From Paragordius varius (lineage: Eukaryota; Animalia; Nematomorpha): a DNA stretch of 64,000 nt. The position numbers and the translations under genes were made by a program. The notes beneath the pieces are model-generated. The model was not told the origin of the DNA and ran no database searches. It saw only the letters and a program-made list of their open reading frames with translations. Positions 13,901 to 52,700 of this stretch are shown one piece after another. The stretch covers positions 2,542,001 through 2,606,000 of the forward strand of contig OZ176055.1 in assembly GCA_964247055.1 (NCBI GenBank), written 5' to 3'. Numbering within the stretch: position 1 is the stretch's first letter; every line of letters begins with the position of its first letter.

Positions 13901-14180
13901 ATCCCATAATTATTATCGCCTGGATTCGCTACAGTACTTTGATTTCCGAATTTTTCGATTCGATTAATCACGCCAAGGGGCAAATCTAAAATAACATCCT
14001 TAATTTAGTTAAAAATATACTTTAGGCGTAAAAAACATTAATCTAAAAGTAGTAACGCCGATGGTACCATTAATAATTCCATTGAATGGGCAAAGAAAAT
14101 TAACGTTTTGACCTAAATATTTATTTTTAATTACTTTCGCACACCATATTCTCTCCGTGAAAAAATTGTATCAGGTTCAT
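4934..14180 (-). CDS. MTMR2: Myotubularin-related PI3P/PI(3,5)P2 3-phosphatase (MTM1/MTMR1/MTMR2 group), catalytically intact
   Basis: Exons (minus strand): 14180-14135 (start uncertain), 14112-14021, 13998-13885, 12880-12779, 12312-12229, 12083-12009, 11104-10953, 10195-9988, 9590-9499, 9086-8993, 8683-8585, 8326-8219, 7859-7392, 7030-6815, 6131-5886, 5248-4934. All junctions are GT-AG and in phase. The translation contains [64 protein letters not shown] (active-site CX5R), [45 protein letters not shown] and a C-terminal coiled coil. The symbol denotes the subfamily; orthology among MTM1/MTMR1/MTMR2 is unresolved. Confidence 0.93.
6151..6494. mobile_element. Small foldback MITE with 21-bp AATTCAAATTCACCCTTGAAC-type repeats (degenerate ends)
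   Basis: The left arm carries caaattcacccttgaacaattcaaattcaccc and the right arm the reverse complement gggtgaatttgaattgtt... repeats. Same family as the copies at 11498 and 47330. Confidence 0.65.
11498..11749. mobile_element. Foldback MITE, 21-bp repeat type AATTCAAATTCACCCTTGAAC, with TACCA...TGGTA ends flanked by TA
   Basis: Starts (ta)TACCAtatacaattcaaattcacccccgaacaattcaaattc..., has about five 21-bp units, and ends ...caagggtggctttaaactgtaaaTGGTA(ta). Confidence 0.7.
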
Positions 14181-38710: not shown

Positions 38711-39446
38711 AATATATATGAAGAAATGTATATTCATCGTGTTATGTAAAGGCAATATTGATTTAATAGCCGTACAAACAGCATTATGGTCCTTACTTTT
38801 TAAAATAACAAAAAATCATGTTAAATGTAAATTTTAAAAATCTTATCTTTGGTGTAAAAGGGCTCTTTATTTGCGATATAAGAGAGCGTGGCCTTTAAAG
38901 ACAATTTTGAAGATATAAGACATCACGAGTGTCAACTTTACCCCTTCGAGTGACCATGTTTCAGCTCCACCCCTAAGGGCTAACCCGCAATAAATATCCA
39001 TTGTATTACTTTGATGTAAGTCTCAAATTTCGCAAAAAGAGATGCCGGAGATTGGTAACCCTGCTCAAATATCAGCGGCTCCAACATTGCTCGCCAAGAT
39101 GCAGGATATTATACCTTTCAATTTTGGCGCATAATACAGTCATGTCTATATAGAATTGTCTTTTTTTTTTATTTAAATGATTATAATTTTTTTTTAATTG
39201 TTTTGATGTTTGATATGTCAACTTTCAACATGCGCATTTTTAAGCCTTAAAATAATAATAGCCTATTTAGTGTAAGAATTTTTAATTTATAATTAAAAGA
39301 TGTTGCAAAATATTATTCTTGAACATTTTATCTACAACATGCGCATGTAATTTATGATAACCAAGTTTAATATATGTTTTCATTTTCTAGGGGTTTTTAA
39401 CATGCACTTAAAATATATAAGAAAACCCAAGCAGATGTCCATTTAA

Positions 39447-39546
39447 TCTCTATATATATAAAGAAATAAATCATAAATCTAGAGTTATTTTAAAAAATTA
39501 TGAATATCAACGATAACCCATTATTTCTTCTTTGCTCGGCAGCTAG
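39447..39546 (+). mobile_element. Possible 100-bp mini-Helitron nested inside the Tc1 element
   Basis: A|TCTCTATATATATAAAG ... GCTCGGCAGCTAG|T, i.e. TC/CTAG ends in an A|T site. The subterminal hairpin is weak (TGC-TCG-GCA). Confidence 0.45.
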
Positions 39547-39669
39547 TGTACTTGAAGGTTTATATTAAAAAATAAAAATTCAGAACAAAATCTAATATTA
39601 AAGGAAAACATAGCTCCCTCAGTTTATACTTTTGAATCGGATACAAGTGAAGAGTCTTCAAGTATTTAT

Positions 39670-40575
39670 ATGTCCTTAACATCTATAAATATATTAAGAA
39701 GAAAAATAATTCTTGGGAATTCTACTGATAGAAATAAATCTGGTCGGCGTAATAAATTCAGAAATCCAGAAATAATAGATGCTGTCAAAAGATTAATAAA
39801 CAATGATTGTGAATTAACAATCGGTGAAATAATGGAACAAATACCAGACCATATTAAAGTATGCAGAGCAACTATTTACAAAATTCTCTCGGATTCAGAA
39901 ATTACTCGAAAGAGGTGTATTTTACAACCTCGGGAACGAAACACCCCAGAGAATATAGAAAAGCGTTATAATTATGCCAGATTGGTGAAAGATATTCCAC
40001 AGGAAAAAGTTTTTTTTATTGATGAGTCAGGCTTCAGTTTGAAACTTACAAATATATGGGGTAGAGCTCCAAAGGGCAAATCTCCTATTGTAGAGGGATT
40101 TAACAAAGGTAAAATTTGAATTTATTTTAGGAAAAAATGTTTCATTGATATGTATGATTGGTTGTCAGGGAGTTATTAATTACAGAACAAAAGAAGGCGC
40201 CTTTAGAGGCGATGATTTTCGAATTTTTTGACGGAATGTTTAACAAGAATTCCTGAAAGTTCAATAATAGTTTGCGATAATGCACCTATTCACAAAGCCG
40301 CGGTGTTAGGTGAGCTAAGGAATAAAATAGTTTATTTACCTCCATATTCGCCACAACTGAATCCCATTGAATGTTTTTTTCATGAGATTAAACATCAATA
40401 TGATAAAAAACCCCGGTGTAGTACCCCTCTAGAGCAACATAATAAAATTGCAAGACTTTGCGAAGAGAGAAGGGAAAAAAATCTAAAAAATTATTATAAT
40501 TTTTCTTCACATATTTTGTTGGAATGTATGCAAAGAAAACCCCTAGAAAATGAAAACAATTATAAATTTATTTAA
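39670..40575 (+). pseudogene. IS630/Tc1-type transposase with a 22-nt intron (40109-40130) and a 1-nt frameshift in the T6 run at 40224-40229
   Basis: HTH-like region (ELTIGEIMEQ..VCRATIYKIL..ITRKR), first Asp in FFIDESGF, second Asp in IVCDNAPIHK, Glu in YLPPYSPQLNPIE. After splicing it reads FNKGKNVSLICMIG..KEGAFRGDDFRIF, then needs one extra T to join LTECL. This could be decay or a homopolymer error. The frame is open upstream to 39556, so the true start may lie 5' of 39670. Confidence 0.85.
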
Positions 40576-41512
40576 ATATTATAATCAATAAATATTTTTA
40601 TCTTTTATATTATATTTTGGTTATGTGTGTTTAAACTTTATTAATAAAATTTTATAATTAATATTTTACAAAAGATAAAAATTACAATATGCGCATGTTG
40701 TGCATCAAGAATAATATTTTGCAATATCTTTTAATTATAAATTAAAAATTCTTACAATAAATAGGCTACTATTATTTTAAGGCTTAAAAATGCGCATGTT
40801 GAAAGTTGACATATCAAACATCAAAACAATTAAAAAAAAATTATAATCATTTAAATAAAAAAAAAAGACAATTCTATATAGACATGACTGTAATAGCTGT
40901 TCTAAGAAAATAGAATATTTGCAAAATTTTTACATAATTAAAAAATGCACCTTTAGTAGTTTTATTTTTAAATTGCCATGAGCATTTATCCTTATAAACT
41001 TCGATTCATATTTACTAGTGCCCCAGCCCATATAATTGATATAAAAACCACACAAAGGCACGGTTATAATTTTAATTTATGCCTCTTAATAAAAATAATT
41101 ATGAGCTAATGTCTCGAAAGTCCATACCAAAATACTTTAATACCATTTTTTGATATTTTTTTATAATATCGGGGTTTTTTAACGCTAAATTTTTATATCT
41201 CCAACAATTTTAACAGTTGTGGTTTATTTATGCATTATTTTAAGCAATGCACACATTTTATGTGGGCTAAATTGGTTTATCCATAAAATGAGTAATATTA
41301 AGTTTTTTCGATTAAATTGTTTATATTTTGATTCATAATGTATATAAGTGCAAACTCTTGCATCCATATTTTATAAAATATTTGATTTATTACTGGCATG
41401 ACACTATTATTATACCGATCTGAAACGAAAGATTGAAATAAATGTTGTGTCTTGCATACTTATCATATGTAATTGCAGGCATTAATTGTCATATGATTTG
41501 CACGCCGTTTTT

Positions 41513-44500
41513 ATGGCCCCATCATTATCTAAGTTTTTTACTTCTGGCTTAAATTCCTATGTTTTTTATATAAAACATTTGAAATCCTTAAACTATGTGT
41601 GTTTTTCACTTTCTAATACCGATGGATTTAATTCAGATCAGTTTAAGGATATCCCTTATTCTCAACTTAAGATAGGCGTTATCAAAGAAAGCCTGCACGG
41701 TGAAAAACGAGTGGCTATTACACCATCCTCAGCTAATTTATTTGCAAAAAAGAAAATCAATGTATTGGTTGAAAGTAATGCCGGGATTCTCTCCAAATTT
41801 ATGAATGAAGATTATATCAAAGGAAACGAGAATTTCGTACATATTTTGCCATCGGCTAACCAAGTCATTAAGGAATCTGACATTGTATTAAAAGTGAGAC
41901 CGCCTACAATAGAGGAAATTGATGTTTTTGGATCGCAAAAATGTTTAGTTAGTTTACTTTATCCCAATCAAAATGATACGATTGTCAAACTTTTACTGGA
42001 AAAGAATATTACCGCATTTGCTTTGGACTGTATTCCTCGTATTAGTAGGGCTCAAGAATATGATGTTTTAAGTTCCATGGCTAATATTTCTGGATACAAG
42101 GCTGTGATTGAGGCAGCTAATCACTTTGGACGCTTTTTCACAGGTTGGTTATCATTTATTTTAGATTGAGGTAAAATTTACCATAAACTTAACCTTGTTT
42201 TATTTATATTTTAATATAAATTGATAATAATATTATCATCAAAAAATCTAACATATGATCCATATTTTACCTGCAAATTTTGTTTTAATGTCCTCTGTCG
42301 ATATATACTAATCTAATTTGGTTGTATTATTTTAATTGGTTATTAATCATATATTGCAAAATCAGAGCAGGCTTTAGCTAACTATTATTTTATGTATGAA
42401 CGTTTTTCAATCAATAATTTACTTAAGGCGCATAATTAGGTTTTTATCAAAGTATTTTTGTGCAAATTTTCATTGGAAAGAATCTAATGGGTCTTCGATT
42501 TGCATTTTTCATATTTTTATGCTGTTAACACTTGGATGCAACACATTCATTTCTGTCCTTCGATCCAAATTGGGATGCATAGTAATACTGATTATTAAAA
42601 TAAAAATTATTTTACAACTTTTGATGATTTAAATTTGATGAAAAAGTGCGATGCTTTTTAATTCTTGTAAGTATTTCTTAAAATGTAAAATCTTTGATTA
42701 ATATTTTGCACATAGAGTTTTCTTTATATTATATATTAACTAATAAAATTTAGTTGACGGTCTATATTGGATTTAATTTTATTTGACCTAAGGCGACAAA
42801 AATGCGATCTTTTGATTTTGGCTTTTTAGCAGAAAAATTACACATTTTTCTAGTATTCTAACCGCATATATCATTTCGATATTCATTATCCTGAAGCCTT
42901 TGCCTATCGTTAACATTTATTTTTCCATCCCCATCTTGCACAGTGTAATAATTTAAATGATGATATTAAATATGCTAAAAAATAAATATTTAATAATTTA
43001 TATTTTAATTTAAATTCATAAAATGTTTGTTAAAATGAAGGACAGAAAAGATATATGCCATCTAAATATAATTAAACTCAGACTAACCTTGCTCAATATT
43101 TTTTATTTTAATTTTATACCGGGAAAAAATATGTTCATTACATACTTCCTACTTATGTCGCTAAATCTTTTAGAGTATATCTTACTCTTAAAAAATAACT
43201 GGATTCGTAAAAAATATATTTAAATAGTTTCATATATTTTATTTAATGGGTAAATTTTTGGTAAAAGAGCATTTATCACTTTAATATTATAATATATAAA
43301 ATAAAAAAAATGAAATATATTTCCCAAAAAACATTTATTTTAAGTGAATCCAAACAAATAATTTTTAATTTTGAATTATTTGTCGTTAGTAAAATTCTAT
43401 ATATAAAATATAATGTAAAATATATTAGCCTTTATTCAAAAATATTAATTTTTGCATTATAAAGTGACCACTCCTGTAAAAAATTCGACATTCGAATAGT
43501 TATTATATCTTTGGTTCATATTTACATATTATTCCTTATTACTTTAAAAACTCTTGATTGAAATGTGATCGATGAAAGCGACAAAAATATAAAACGCCCA
43601 AATTAAATATAGAATAACCAAATCACGAAACGATTTAAGAATCGTTTTTAAGGGTGTACCGTTATTTAACGATGAGACATAAATAAATATTAAAATGGTC
43701 TAACTTAAGATAAAGACAAAACATATCTTTTGTACGACAACCATAATTTTTAAACCTTTTATTCTTTATACAACTTTTCGTTTTCGGTTTTAAAAATAGA
43801 GATGTAACTTATTAATACACTTTATTTACCTAATAGTATAGTTTAAAATGATAGAGTATGCACATTTATGCTGGCTTATTCACAGTATTGGTGGCCAATT
43901 GGCAACACAGTAGTGTATGGGTAAAAACAACAAAATATTGAAATTAAACAATATTATCCATTTGTTTATTTAATTATGGACGAAATTTGTTTTATAACAC
44001 ACGCTAATGTGTATTACGAATTGGCCAACAATAATGTGAATGGGCCAGCATAAATGTGTATATTGTAAATCTATTTTTCGAAAAAACAGTACTTTTTTTA
44101 CTTGTTTTGTCATTATTTCAATTTTAATATTTTTTTGCTGCAATTCATGCAATAAACCCAATTTAAAAAAAAAATTATTAATATTTTGCAGTAAAAATTG
44201 AAATTATGCGAGAACAAAAGGTAAAAATATAAAAAATTTCAAAAAACGAAACCACACTCCTTGATTTTATTTCCATCAATAATAACAATCGTAATACATG
44301 TATATTACCAATATACATCCCTATTTTAAACTTTGAAAAAAATATGGTTGTCTTTTAGAAAAAAATAATTGTCTTTATATTTTTACGTTTTGTTCTTTAT
44401 TATTTTATTCTATTCATATATTTTAGGTCAAATAACAGCTGCCGGTAAAATTCCACCAGCTAAAGTTTTGATTGTTGGAGCGGGTGTAGCGGGTTTGTCC

Positions 44501-47500
44501 GCAATAGCGACCGCTAAAAATATGGGTGCTATCGTTCGGGCTTTTGATACCAGGCCTGCGGCCCGCGAACAGGTCCAGAGTTTGGGTGCCCAATTTTTGG
44601 AGATAAAACTTAAACCTGGATCATCCAAAGTATATACTTTTTAAAAATTATAAATTTGTTGAATTTTCCTTAAATTGAAATCGAGCAAGCACTCTTTATA
44701 AGCCATATCTGTAGTTTAAATGGCTCAAAGAGTATGAAATTTACATATCAGTAGCCATGTATGAGATTTTTCGTTTTATAATTTACATATTTATAGTATG
44801 CTCATTTATGCTGGTCTAATCACATTATAAATGTTGCCCCAACCGGTAATACAGTAACGTGTGCTATAAAATAAAACTTGTCCATAATTAAGTAAAACAA
44901 AAGGAAAAAATTGTTTATTTTTAACATTTTGTTATTTTCACCCATATACTCATGTGTTGCCAAGTGGTCAATAAATATGTGCACACTGTTATATTTTGAA
45001 TTATTGTAAAATTTATAAAATTCAATTATATATCACAAATGATGTTGAATATGTGTTTAATAGTGTTTAAAACAAAAAGACTTAATTTTTGGAGGTATTT
45101 TGAGAATTTCGTATAATTTATTCTAGTATTGAATTATAAAGTATGATTAAGTTTATACTAGAAAGTTATTAATTACTGATAACAGCATATGCAGCAAAAA
45201 GAATTATTATTGGCTAATAATAGTAAAAAGTGAAAAAAAACTATAAGCCAATAATACTGCCCTTTGTTGTATCTGCTCTTTGGCAATAATTAATTACTTC
45301 CTAACCTCATACTGTTAGTGCTGTTAAACATAAAAATCCATATGGGAAACAAAGATTTATTATTATATTGTATGTTAACGTAACTTTAAAAATGTTAATT
45401 ATTTAAAAAATAACTTGCTAATAGTACATATTTAATTTTTCATTCATTTGATATAAAAAAACAATATATCTCTTTATAAGGGCTTCTTATTCAATTTGAA
45501 TAATTATTAATAAATTTTAAGCAATAATTTTCCAAATTCCGATAATAATGACCAGTAATGTTATGTTAAAAACTATATCTTTATTGCTAAAAATCAATTC
45601 AAAAATAGTGTTTTAATCAAATATTCAACATGTTATTTATTAAAATTTCATTCCATTTATAATTATTTTAATGATAATAATTTTTGGATTTAGAATAATA
45701 CAACAGAATCTGGGGAAACCGCTGGTGGGTATGCCAAAGAAATGTCACCAGAATTTTTGAAAGCAGAAAAAGAGCTGTTTTTTGAACAGTGTCGCGATAT
45801 AGATATATTAATCACTACGGCTCAAATATTTGGGAAAAAAGCACCATTACTTTTTTCTAAAGTATGGCAGTATTTTATCAAAATATAAAGTTTTTTTATG
45901 TAATAAAAATGTAATATAGGTATATAGTTGTAGGTTAATGAAAACTTTATGACTGTTTTTATATTTTTTAATGATGCTTTGTTTTTTATTTAGGTAATAA
46001 ATTAATTTTTAATAGTTTGGACATGACCTTTTTTTAAACATTTAAATATTTAAATCAGATATATAATTATCTTATATTATTTTGGTTATATCTTTATACT
46101 TAAAAAATTGAAAACTGTGCACATTAAATCTTGACTTTATTTGATAGATAAACACTTTATTAATTTTTCACTTTTTTTTCATATTCATTGTTATCAAAAT
46201 CATGGTTTAAAAAGTAAGTAAGCTTTAAAAAATATTTTTCATACCAAAATTAAGAGAATTACGCATTATATCATGTGTAATTGAATCGAGCTTGCGTGAA
46301 TACGTATTAAATAAAATTAATTTATATCCCTTAGTTTTTACATCCATGTTTTTACATGTAATTTTTTTGTTTTGAACATAAATAGGAAATGATTGAGGGT
46401 ATGAAACCAGGTAGTGTGGTCGTTGATTTAGCCGCGGAAACTGGTGGGAATGTCGAGCTGACAAAAGCTGGTGACACTTTTATTACACCCCAAGGTGTAA
46501 CCATAATTGGGCAAACGGATTTCCCTTCACGGCTAGCTACGCAAGCTTCAACCCTGTTTGCAAACAATGTAGCTAAATATTTGCTCTCTATGAGTATGGT
46601 TTTTGGTTTTTGAAAAGCTTTTTTTGGATGTTTTTAATAATTAATTAGTTGTTTTTAGACTTGATTAGTTTAAAACAGAGGTGTCCAACACGCTTTGTTC
46701 GGTACACAAAAGTGATGCTCAGAAAATGTTAAAAAAATAAAAAATTTATTTGCAATCAAAAATTTACGATTATTTAGAAAATTATCATCCAGTGGGCTCA
46801 AAGAAAAATATAATAAGACATTTATGTTGGAAACCTCTGGTGTTAAATATATGGTTAGGTTATATTATAAAAGATTTATTACTCCACAATGCGTTGGGGA
46901 AATAAGTTATGAGCTTTTGGTTTTATAATTAAGCGATTTACACAATATAATGAGCTTTTTTAGAAATTATTCAAAATATGAGACTTTTTTTAAAAAAAAT
47001 GAGTCATTATTACCTTAACTTTTGTATACTAATTGGTTTTTTTTGTTTATAATGCATTTTTTATGGCATAAATAAGTTTTTAGATTTTAAGGATATGTAT
47101 TAAACATAATTTTCTTACTGGGTAGTGCTATTTTTTGGTTTTCTAACTTATTATATTCGATATGACCTGAATCGTTTTATTAAAATATAGGATGGGTGCA
47201 TAAAACAATTTCGTAAATATTTTTGAGGGGATATAGCTATCGTTCATTAAATTAGATAAAGAATTGTTTTGTAATACTCAAAATATTTTTATAAGCCATA
47301 AATCCTTATTACATAAAACATTATGAATATACCCTTTACAATTCTAACCCTTATTCAAATTCACCCTTGAACAATTCTAATTCACCTTAAAAATAAATTT
47401 GTGTTTTCAGGCTAATATAATTCATTATTAATATAAAATATATCTTAATGGCATAGTTTATTATTTTTTCAGTATTATTTTAATTTTAAACAAATTTTCT

Positions 47501-49749
47501 TTTTAAAAAAATATAAATAATTTTTAATCTTAAAACACTTAATTTATTTTAGGGTGAATTTGAACTGTAAATGGTATATTTAAAAGTTCTCAGTTATGGA
47601 CCAATTTTTATATAACAGCCAATATAATATTTTTAATTGATAAAATCGGTTTTTTTGTTTTTGTTTTAAACCCAATACCTAATGTTTAGATCGAAACGGT
47701 GACACATTTCACATTGATTTGAGTGATGTCGTGGTCCGAGGTAGTTTAATAACACATAATGGGGTATTGTTCTACCCACCTCCTCCTTTACAAGTTTCTG
47801 TTGGTACTCAAACTACCCCCTTGAGTGAAACCACAGTAGACAAAGGTAAATATTTAAAATGGAATTCAACGGTTATTCTCTTATGTATTCTTTTATAAAA
47901 TAAATTTATTAATTTGTTTGGTTTTTTAATTAAATTATATCACATTTGCTTTCAAAACATATTTTTTGCCCAATCGAAGTTTCGAAGCAGTTTAATTATT
48001 ATTTTATTGTATATCAAAATTATAAAATTAAAGTCCTTTTTTATTTTTGGTAAAATAATTTGATATTAGTTAATATATTTGCATTTGAATCATATAATTT
48101 ACTCATTCGCAATCCAGATTATTATTATATCGAGTCGATGGAGAATAATATTTTTTTTACTTTATTTTTTGTATTTAAATTGGAGCACTATTTTATTTTC
48201 TAACCATTATTTTACTCGTTTTTTTACAATAATTATTTTTGATAGACGCTTTTTTTATTTAATCTATTCTGACAAATAACTTCCAAAACAATTATCAGGT
48301 GGTTCCAGTCCTTTGAATGCTTCTTCTGGTACGGCTTTACTTAATAAAGCTAAAGAAAGAGCCCTGAGTCCATTTCAAGCAACTATGCGAAATGTCATTC
48401 TATACACTGGAGGTTTAATTATATTAGTATTTTTGGATACTATTTCATTTTTTGAAAAGTTTTATATGATATGCAGTCAGTATCCTTTATTTTATCAAAA
48501 ATTTATTTTCTGTTAAATGGGTGCAAATATTTGTTAAAGAATGGAAAAACAAGAGTTCTATGGGATTAACAATATCATATTTATCAAAAAAGTATGAGAA
48601 TTACCAGAGACCTCTTGTTTTTTTCATCCTTTACCAAATATTTATACCCATTTAACAAAAAAAATAAATTTTTGATAAAAGGATACATGACTGTTGAAAT
48701 TTTTATTATAAGCAATTTGTTGTTGAATAATCAAATTCTTTAAATTAATTATTAAGGATTGTTTGAAACAGTATAAAAATAAAAGCCATTTCCTGGCTTT
48801 TTATTTTTATTCCATACATGCATATGTGACATCCATAAAGCAAGGTTTTAAAATTCATTTAATTTAATTAAGGGAATTAATTAATTTGTTAAATATACTC
48901 TAAATGTATATTTAATTCTATATAAATATAACTAATTAAATTAGCAAATTGTTTGTCATAATTTATTTTTATAATTTAATATTTGTATATCATATATACA
49001 TATATTTTTAGGCTTGGGGTCTATGGTAGGTTTAGGAGCTGTATCCCCTGGCCCAGCATTTAATACAATGTGTACTACGTTTGCTTTGTCCACCATTGCA
49101 GGTTTACTATATATAATTTAAATAAAATTTTGATTTTTTTTAAATTTTAAATGATTATTTTTTAATTTATATGAGATGATTTTCAAAAAGACAATATCTT
49201 TATATTTTTGTGGAGTCAATTTTAAAAAAACGCAGGTCACACTTTTAATTTTTAATTATGAAAAAAATAATCTCATATAACATATACAAAAAAACTATTT
49301 ATCTATTTCATAGATTGCGTAAAAAATATAAAAAATTAACTTTTACACTTTTTAATCAAATCATGGTGGTAGGTTATCACACAGTGTGGGGCGTCAAACC
49401 AGCCCTACATTCTCCCCTCATGTCTGTAACGAATGCCATCTCAGGACTTACAGCTATTGGTGCGTTACTTATGTTAAATACGCCCAATCATTATTTCAAT
49501 GGAAACTCTAATATTAACACTGCATCGCCGCCCACAATTAGTGGAGGTTTTTACTTTAATTTTTGTGTAAAAGTTTGGATATCTAAAATTTTATGTTTTG
49601 CAATGATTTTTATTTTTTTGGGGGAACTGGAATTAAAATCATTTCTGTGTCCTGTAGTTTTCCGTATTTTATTTAATATTATAATGGTTAATCGTTTTGT
49701 TTTTCGTTTTAATTCTATAGATATGCTCAAATATTTTGATACTATACAT

Positions 49750-49797
<48 letters not shown>

Positions 49798-52700
49798 ATA
49801 TAAACAGCAAAATTTTATTTTGTTGAATATAATTAAAATATATTAAAAAAATATTCTTTTTAAATAATATAACAAGCATTATAAACGTGAGTTTTACCCA
49901 TAAGAGTAAAAAATAAAGCAATAAAAATATTATATTTTTATGGCAAATTTTGCCCGTTTTTTTAAAACTTTAATGTTTTGGTATCCACAAAATTGTGTTA
50001 ATTATTTAGCAATTTTTTTGATAAATTTAATATAAATTATAGCCTTACATTTAATCTGTTTGTTTAGGTTTTTTGCAACAGTTTTGGGCAGATTTAGCAT
50101 CCCTAAGTACGACGCAACATTTAGCCAGCGCGGCCATTTTGTTGTCTGCTATAAACATTGGAGGGGGCTTTCTTATAACGCAACGCATGTTGGATATGTT
50201 TAAGCGACCAAGTATTATATTACTTATATATAAACATAAATTTTTTTTTAAATTTAACCTATAATTTTAACCCAATCAAAAAAATTTGTATTTTTGTGTG
50301 CAATCTTATTCTTATTATATAAATATTCCATATTTACAAATTTTATATTTACACAGTAAAAATTGTAAATATACGGGACAAAACGTAAAAATATAAGGAC
50401 AAATATAAAATGCAAACAAAAATCTTAATTTTTCCTATATAAACTATCTAAAAATTGTACAATATGTAATTGATTGTGACACTAATATTCATCTCTTCTC
50501 CATACTTTGCAATTTCAAACTAGAGTTTCCGTTAAATAAATCAAGATTTTAAAAGTATATGATTGTTTTTTTACAAAAAATAATCTATCTATATATTTTT
50601 AATTAATTTAAAAATTTTACATTTTTTATATAAAAATATTTTACATATATTTAGCCGATCCCCCGGAATATAATTATTTATATTTGATTCCTACCACTGT
50701 TTTTCTAAGTTCATATCTAACAGCATATTACCATTATCATCTGCCTAACGTTAAAGAGATCGGAGAATTGGGTATTATGATAAAAATTAAAATATCATTA
50801 ATTCATTTTCATAAATTGGTTAAATTTATTTTCGATATTAAATCTAAAACATTTAAGCAAGTGTATAACATTTAAAAATTGGTTATGTTTCAAATAATAT
50901 AATATTCAAGGATTCAACTAAAACTGAGAAAAAAAGAATTTTGAAAGATTGAAACGGGTCTTAATATACTATATATCAGATTAGCTCATTCTGTTTAAAA
51001 TATACTAAAAAACGCCAATAGCTTTAAACGTATATTTAATTCCATAGCCTCATATGAAAATAAACAAAAGTAAAAACTCAAAGTTTAATATTTTAGATAC
51101 AACAGTGACCCTTAAATTATTTAATAATTATTATTTGGGATGTAATACAGATGTAAATTGGTTATTTTAATTAATTGAAACGGTAAACCTAAAAATCATA
51201 TATGTCAAGGTTTTTAAAAGATGATATTCTTATAGTTTTTACATTTTGTTTTAATTAATTTTTATCAATTCCTTATTTGTGTTTAGCTTCTGCCATGTGT
51301 TGTTTGGGTTCTTTAGCTGGTCTCGCTTCCCAGAAAACGTGTCGAATAGGGAATGCCCTAGGTTTAACTGGTGTTTTAGGCGGCTTAACTATAACCCTTT
51401 CAACATTTCACCCAATTAATCAATTGAATGGAAGTAGCTCTAACGCAATTAGTACCACTCTAAATGAAAATTTATTAAGGTTTGTATTGCATTTTTTAAA
51501 ATGCCATTTTTTTGCAAATAACTAATATTTAAATGATAATTTAGCTCAATATTAATCATTATTTGTCGCCATTTTGCTAAAGTGTTTTTTAATTTAGAAT
51601 ATTCTATTAATAATAAGTTAACATCGAATTTTTATTTCGCAAAAATTTATGTTTTAAGCTCTAAAAAACGAACTTTTAAATAATTTTTTATTTTAATCAT
51701 AATTGTCTCATAAAAGTTATTTTTAAACACCTATTGGTCATTTTAATAAGAGCTCAAACGCATTCAGTACCGCTTTAATTGATAATTTACTTTTTTACTT
51801 TAGAATAACTATATATATAATTTTTAAAGGCAAAATACGAATTTTTTATTAATTTTAGATTTTTTAATCATGATTGTCGCATAACCCTTTTAATATTTCA
51901 CACAATTAATCAATTAAATAACGCAATCAGTACCACTCTTAATGATAATATACCAAAGTTAAGCATCATTGATTAATAATGAGTAAAAATCCAATTTTTA
52001 TCTAAAAAAAACTATTTTTTTATTAATAGAAATATGTAAATCAAGAAATTACAATATATGTATAGATATAAGAATTTTTTTTATTTTTAACTTTTAATCT
52101 ATAAAAACAAAACATTTAATTAGTAAATCAATTATGTGGTTGTTTTGTTTTTTACTTTGTTTTACTGAATATATATGACTTTTTATTGTAAACCTCACAA
52201 TCATTGTAAAATAGAGAAAATGTCTTCTAATACAGATTATATATAAATTGGATATTTATGATAAAAATATTTATTAGATTTTCCATTAAATATATAATTC
52301 CGAATAGGTTATGATTTTTAAATTACAAAGTCACTTTTTTTGTATACGCCTAATAGATTACATGACGTGATGTTATCAAATCCGGCCATGTCTCAAGCCC
52401 TAATGTTACTAACTAGTGGAACTCTCTTGGGTTCAGTTATAGCGAAACGAATTCCCATAACTGATTTACCTCAATTAGTTGCCCTTTTCCATTCGTTTGT
52501 GGGTTTAGCTGCTGTGCTAACGTGTCTTTCAGATTTTTATCACTTACATAGGTAGGCGGCAACTTTAGTTTTTTTGACATTTTGAGAAAAGGTGTAATGT
52601 AATTTGGTTTAATTTTGAGGTGAAAATTAAAAAAATTTGTGGGTTAATTATATATTTTTATCATTTACATACTTAAGTAAGTAGATTTTTTATTAGAGGG

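Follow-up and report, generated by a model that had tools for sequence, protein, structure and literature searches.

The window, the whole 64,000-nucleotide stretch of DNA analyzed here, contains at positions 39139–40890 a dead copy of a young, multi-copy cut-and-paste transposon of the Tc1/IS630 type, whose inverted ends measure about 185 nt and whose transposase is of the D,D,E kind. Two inverted arms of 191 nt (39132–39322 and 40705–40895) are 98% complementary, and comparing copies set the ends of the element at 39139 and 40890. The left terminal inverted repeat, with the terminus CAGTCATG, occupies 39139–39322 on the plus strand and the right one 40705–40890 on the minus strand, both being defined by the inverted pair together with the copy comparison. 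The target-site duplications, each a TA, lie at 39137–39138 and 40891–40892. Six of the seven copies compared have a TA directly before CAGTCATG and another directly after CATGACTG, with unrelated flanks beyond; the left terminus is mutated in copy L003. The TA duplication, the terminal inverted repeats, and a DDE_3-type catalytic domain were all found, which places the element with Tc1/mariner-IS630 transposons and agrees with the first-pass annotation, in which it had been called a DNA transposon. Tc1 and Sleeping Beauty, both of this superfamily, likewise have a TA duplication, a terminal CAGT, and long inverted ends. In addition, a 16-nt motif, TACAACATGCGCATGT, with the palindromic core ATGCGCAT, is present twice per end about 100 nt apart (39224–39239 and 39333–39348; 40683–40698 and 40784–40799), an arrangement that resembles the paired transposase-binding sites of Sleeping Beauty-type ends.

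The transposase gene runs on the plus strand and is interrupted in the window copy by a deletion. Exon 1 (39500–39557, 58 nt) starts with the ATG at 39500, is open up to a GT donor, and is intact; it is followed by micro-intron A (39558–39583, 26 nt, GT..AG, phase 1) and exon 2 (39584–39661, 78 nt). Only the first 6 nt of micro-intron B (39662–39667), which has 24 nt in intact copies, precede the deletion junction. Beyond it lie 441 of the 543 nt of exon 4 (39668–40108), which encode a putative second helix-turn-helix region as well as the first catalytic Asp (FFIDESGF), then micro-intron D (40109–40130), and finally exon 5 (40131–40575), with the second catalytic Asp (VCDNAPIH), the Glu (NPIE), and the stop codon TAA. 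Compared with copies L002–L008, the window copy has lost 206 nt internally, with the junction at about 39668, directly before the ATG at 39670, and the lost sequence takes in 18 nt of intron B, the 63 nt of exon 3, the 23 nt of intron C, and 102 nt from the start of exon 4. Moreover, exon 5 is frameshifted by the loss of one base in a run of T at 40224–40229, whereas its intact counterpart in L002 (1504–1944, minus strand) has 147 codons. The run has six T in the window copy, seven in 12 of 13 closely related copies, and eight in the decayed copy L012. With a deletion and a frameshifted exon 5, the window copy is dead. The ORF at 39670–40119 is thus not the working gene for which it had been taken, and its ATG is an internal Met rather than a gene start, because intact copies hold about 206 nt more just upstream. 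Since its ends are intact, the window copy might still be moved by transposase from another copy. Frameshifts in otherwise good copies sit in T runs, namely the one at 40224–40229 and a run at L070:1395–1401 with one extra T; such T-run frameshifts could be homopolymer assembly errors rather than real mutations.

The 22-nt segment at 40109–40130, GTAAAATTTGAATTTATTTTAG, has GT at its start and AG at its end. The TGA that closes the ORF 39670–40119 lies inside it, at 40117–40119, and because that ORF sets 40108 as the first position of a Gly codon, the segment is in phase 1. Removing it joins ..EGFNK-G, the Gly codon being split as G/GA, to KNVSLICMIGCQGVINYRTKEGAF (KNVSLICMIG..KEGAF). The letters and the ORF coordinates hence bear out the earlier description of a 22-nt, phase-1 segment containing the stop. 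Even with the segment removed, the window copy reads into a second TGA after KEGAFRGDDFRIF. Introns of 22 nt are below the size that most animal spliceosomes accept. The segment has the properties of a spliceosomal GT-AG intron: it has GT..AG ends, its removal restores the frame and the match to homologues, and its position and phase are kept in diverged copies while the inner sequence is free to change. It is very probably a spliceosomal micro-intron of the Tc1/IS630-type transposon, as argued by five independent lines of sequence evidence, drawn from all copies, protein profiles, sister subfamilies, selection, and relatives. Judged on the same grounds, the pattern is not due to chance, being present in all 14 copies with exact flanks and at the same codon in two other subfamilies.

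All profile and database searches were run exon by exon, and continuity across the gap was judged from profile and alignment coordinates. The last 48 exon 4 residues were compared with Pfam DDE_3: residue 42 falls at profile position 28, which extrapolates residue 48 to position 34; the split Gly fits position 35, and residue 2 of exon 5 aligns to position 37, so that none is missing or extra. Likewise, with the NCBIfam IS630 profile, residue 140 of exon 4 aligns to position 173 and residue 3 of exon 5 to position 183, again with none missing or extra. These coordinates, together with the alignment of relatives, agree with the proposal that the joined reading runs on from the first catalytic Asp to the second exactly as expected for Tc1/IS630. 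The intact exon 5 scores 62.7 bits against DDE_3 (cut-off 28.6) and that of the window copy 48.8 bits. In the alignment with relatives, the catalytic columns D155/E156 and D241/N242 and the NPIE motif are nearly invariant and are present here, in a domain that is frameshifted in the window copy. In a PDB search, the part of the protein with the second catalytic Asp and the Glu could be aligned with the Sleeping Beauty chain 5cr4, and the same search with exon 4 gave no match. Upstream of the segment, HTH_Tnp_Tc3_2 and HTH_32 each score 18 bits, which is weak and under both Pfam cut-offs; a W..EK..A motif in the upstream region is common to the paralogues. The bacterial IS630 equivalog NF033545 scores 59.6 bits with exon 5 and 36.6 bits with exon 4 against a curated cut-off of 100, and the transposase is a relative of that equivalog rather than a member. 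This clade and the two Gordionus relatives have 30 residues between the second Asp and the Glu, as against about 33–34 in other relatives and 34 in Sleeping Beauty; we know of no described family with a 30-residue spacing.

The genome (110.6 Mb in 44 contigs) holds at least 14 near-full copies that are 94–100% identical in the coding part, as well as many more diverged ones, and nine young copies are 97.9–99.8% identical among themselves. Segment D is present in all 20 copies that were aligned. It is 22 nt long in L001–L014 and L028 and 21 nt in the decayed L016, and its length is ambiguous in L018, L027, and L030, the most diverged, decayed copies of this alignment. We also searched the whole genome with a pattern consisting of the two exon edges separated by 0–30 free bases. 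This yielded 14 sites with a spacer of 22 nt in every one of them, and neither an intron-free copy nor any other spacer length was found among these exact-flank sites. The presence and conserved length of the intron in other genomic copies, put forward earlier as a check, are thereby confirmed, and the copy alignment and the exon-edge search together rule out an insertion specific to this copy.

A protein search of the genome itself uncovered sister subfamilies, two of which, 60–66% identical to this family in protein, also have intron D. L046 is 66% identical in exon 5 and has a 24-nt intron, GTATAATGAAAATATATTATATAG; L050 is 61% identical in exon 5 and has a 22-nt intron, GTATATTTTTATTTTATTTTAG. 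Both introns interrupt the homologous Gly codon in phase 1, and their sequences are unrelated beyond GTA..AG. At first sight L046 is a candidate for an intron-free sister family, having a continuous ORF of 342 codons, but this frame is open because its 24-nt intron is in frame and stop-free. Aligned with all the other sequences, the 8 residues that come from reading through the intron form an insertion, and the candidate was rejected. Between the three subfamilies, pS is 0.69–0.87 and pN is 0.21–0.33 in both exon 4 and exon 5, and dN/dS, where computable, is about 0.12–0.23. Purifying selection has thus acted on both sides of the segment, and the low pN at saturated pS means that exon 5 has been under such selection in a frame that becomes accessible only once segment D is taken out.

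Intron D had been taken as the single intron of the transposase gene; however, we counted four micro-introns of 26, 24, 23, and 22 nt, all GT..AG and in phase 1. The intact region upstream of 39670 keeps a W..EK..A..F..P motif in all families and has no in-frame ATG. To arrive at an ATG, its frame has to cross three more GT..AG segments, which measure 26, 24, and 23 nt in L002-type copies and are all in phase 1. The resulting exons of 58, 78, 63, 543, and 446 nt add up to 1188 nt, or 396 codons. Under this five-exon model, L002–L006 have no interruption between ATG and stop and keep all eight splice dinucleotides; L007 departs from it only by an in-frame deletion of 3 nt. Of 15 aligned copies, 13 have micro-intron A at 26 nt. 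The segment that precedes the FW motif by two codons has the same site and phase in L046 (23 nt), L050 (22 nt), L070 (22 nt), and L064 (23 nt), and this intron site looks older than intron D. Counterparts of introns B and A measure 24 and 25 nt in L046, where A is in phase 1, and 22 and 24 nt in L050. Introns A and B are predicted solely from reading-frame logic and from these matching subfamily segments, their flanking exons having no outside homologues.

One could suppose that the 22 nt are an old insertion that killed the gene, that the whole family consists of pseudogenes moved in trans, and that nothing is spliced. Such a history would suit the dead window copy and a length that is under the usual size limit of animal introns. 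It is hard to reconcile, however, with purifying selection on exon 5 in a frame that needs segment D removed, with three synonymously saturated subfamilies that keep GT..AG at the same codon at 22–24 nt, and with five copies that are open across five exons of a total length divisible by 3, a sixth having only the in-frame 3-nt deletion. Moreover, the genome-wide exon-edge search found no intron-free master copy. We regard this explanation as very unlikely and retain a spliced, five-exon gene as the preferred reading.

Sequences outside the three subfamilies are continuous at the site of intron D. Among the distant paralogues, L061 reads ..PRGKNINYLAMIG.., and L062 and L066 read ..KGRNIT... The outside relatives P0001–P0016 are continuous as well, examples from paralogues and relatives being ..PRG-KNINYLAMIG.. 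and ..PSK-G-KNLSIL... They include two Gordionus proteins (P0001 and P0004, 34–39% identity), which are the best two outside matches, along with environmental sequences and fungal Tc1-like proteins. The protein database search returned no protein of the source species, and the best outside identity was 39%. The expectation that homologous transposases in other taxa lack the intron is accordingly satisfied by all the outside relatives found. In a tree built from the exon 5 region, the three subfamilies with intron D group together in one clade (support 85/80), nested in a larger clade that consists of only this genome's sequences (support 94/96). This nested, single clade fits one gain of intron D within a long-resident lineage. 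The suggestion that the transposase has long resided with its host also fits, as the selection comparison and the tree make intron D old within the radiation of the lineage in this genome.

We therefore favor, at a probability of roughly 0.85, the interpretation that the window holds a dead copy of a Tc1/IS630-type family whose five-exon gene would contain four spliceosomal micro-introns, with intron D probably gained once on the stem of the three subfamilies. Intron D, the fourth of the four, splits a Gly codon that lies after the first catalytic Asp and before the second. We infer that the host spliceosome removes its 22 nt, which would restore ..EGFNK-G-KNVSLICMIG... The gain would have preceded the split of the three subfamilies, whose synonymous sites have since become saturated within this genome. 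Some mechanism other than the spliceosome, such as ribosomal hopping or precise somatic excision of the DNA, could in principle bypass the segment. We consider this extremely improbable, given that GT..AG ends are kept in every intact copy and subfamily, that the 3' ends are T-rich, and that candidate branch sites (TTGA, TTAA, CTAA, and CTGA) lie about 10 nt upstream of the AG. To our knowledge, precise excision of short intragenic DNA segments is known only from ciliates.

If intron D is real, its retention might also be regulated, for instance by tissue, and give a truncated, DNA-binding-only repressor in analogy with the third intron of the P element. Retention in the L002 family leads to a stop after 3 codons, a TGA or TAA is present in all copies, and in L050 a stop follows just after the intron; the truncated product would keep the putative DNA-binding region. 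Retention in L046, by contrast, would merely add 8 residues, its intron being 24 nt long, in frame, and stop-free, so that truncation is not conserved among the subfamilies and does not behave as a conserved design feature. At 26% GC (26.4% in the window), most segments of 22–24 nt hold a stop or shift the frame by chance, and from the true start codon the window copy could not produce the truncated protein. That intron retention makes a repressor is speculation, weakened by the L046 intron, and we judge regulated retention unlikely. The only point shared with the P element, whose transposase belongs to a different superfamily, is the proposed logic by which a retained intron yields a truncated DNA-binding protein.

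The same 22-nt length had been claimed for a host gene, and two GT..AG segments of 22 nt do lie between exons of a myotubularin gene on the minus strand of the window, at 14113–14134 (GTAATTAAAAATAAATATTTAG) and 13999–14020 (GTATATTTTTAACTAAATTAAG). In a PDB search, the exons flanking 13999–14020 match residues 21–46 and 55–87 of the MTMR2 chain 1zsq, in the PH-GRAM part, and MTMR1 likewise; these adjacent matches identify the two exons as neighboring pieces of one domain. For 14113–14134, the match is that of the downstream exon only (MTMR2 residues 21–46), and the upstream join, compared by eye with the myotubularin sequence, presumably fits. Pfam searches with the short host exons gave nothing useful. 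The transposon introns (22–26 nt) and the host segments are alike in their GTA start, AT-rich body, and (T/A)AG end. When the window was scanned for frame-bridging GT..AG segments of 16–40 nt, these were no more frequent than segments bounded by decoy dinucleotides, which means that a genome-wide intron class cannot be defined from the window by itself; the scan gave three matches of 22 nt, precisely the three segments already known. Another host gene, directly downstream of the transposon (41486–42169 and 49258–49803, plus strand), looks by eye, from its ORF translations, like an NAD(P) transhydrogenase, and candidate GT..AG segments at 46358–46385 (28 nt) and 48050–48069 (20 nt) bridge its open frames.

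The micro-introns of L002, L046, L050, and L070 and those at 39558–40130 of the window are all in phase 1 and follow an A or a G. None of the micro-introns in L002–L010, where all four are full length, is shorter than 22 nt, and lengths of 19–21 nt occur only in the decayed copies L011, L013, L014, and L016, which hints at a length floor of 22 nt. Family L070 has no intron D; it has another in-frame GT..AG segment of 24 nt (L070:1526–1549) 9 codons downstream (MIGIF-G/../VVKYE), which looks like an independent gain, as well as a 22-nt segment two codons before the FW motif, at about L070:950–971. A broader and more tentative idea, which we hold as possible but short of probable, is that the spliceosome of this animal removes introns down to a floor of 22 nt and that its resident DNA transposons have gained micro-introns repeatedly (intron D on its stem, the one in L070, and the older one before the FW motif), all in phase 1. 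If this is true, transposon families would record micro-intron gain, and the introns would tie the elements to hosts able to splice them.

Introns in Tc1-type transposases have precedents, and both Tc3 and Minos contain them. The Tc1-like TLEWI elements of bivalves have 2–5 introns at conserved positions, are present in few copies, have no inverted ends, and are probably domesticated (bioRxiv 10.1101/656579). In Tc1-Mariner families of Sclerotinia sclerotiorum, ESTs show both excision and retention of introns (PMC4188875). Like these, the present family has a Tc1-type gene broken by GT..AG introns that would need host splicing; unlike TLEWI, it has inverted ends, TA duplications, and near-identical copies, and its introns are only 22–26 nt long. 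It also differs from Tc1 and Sleeping Beauty in having its gene split by four micro-introns, with the nearest outside proteins only 34–39% identical. GT..AG introns of about 15–30 nt with a narrow size range occur in ciliates (Paramecium and Stentor), chlorarachniophyte nucleomorphs, and dicyemids, whereas the micro-introns described here lie in an AT-rich animal genome. Our literature search found no paper linking Nematomorpha with short introns. While spliceosomal introns in Tc1-type transposases and very short introns in other lineages are already known, what is new here is that the two come together: in an animal genome, a young and mobile-looking family of the Tc1 type has a gene from which four introns of 22–26 nt would have to be removed. 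If they are spliced, there is an animal that can remove introns only about half as long as the usual minimum, and a mobile transposon of the Tc1 type relies on this ability at four places. The family would then be a natural test set for the minimum length of introns, for how and where micro-introns are gained, and for whether host-specific introns limit the horizontal spread of transposons. In practice, ORF-based annotation will call these transposases broken, although five or six copies are probably intact.

L063, L064, and L065, the sister clade of the intron-bearing subfamilies, have open frames of 327–342 codons and have lost the DNAPIH and NPIE motifs, the latter reading NPAH, and they may be inactive or domesticated transposase relatives. 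In L050, as also in L051 and L053, the 5' part (L050:300–860) contains a unit of about 197 nt in three tandem copies, each L050 unit consisting of an exon piece and two GT..AG segments of 22–24 nt.
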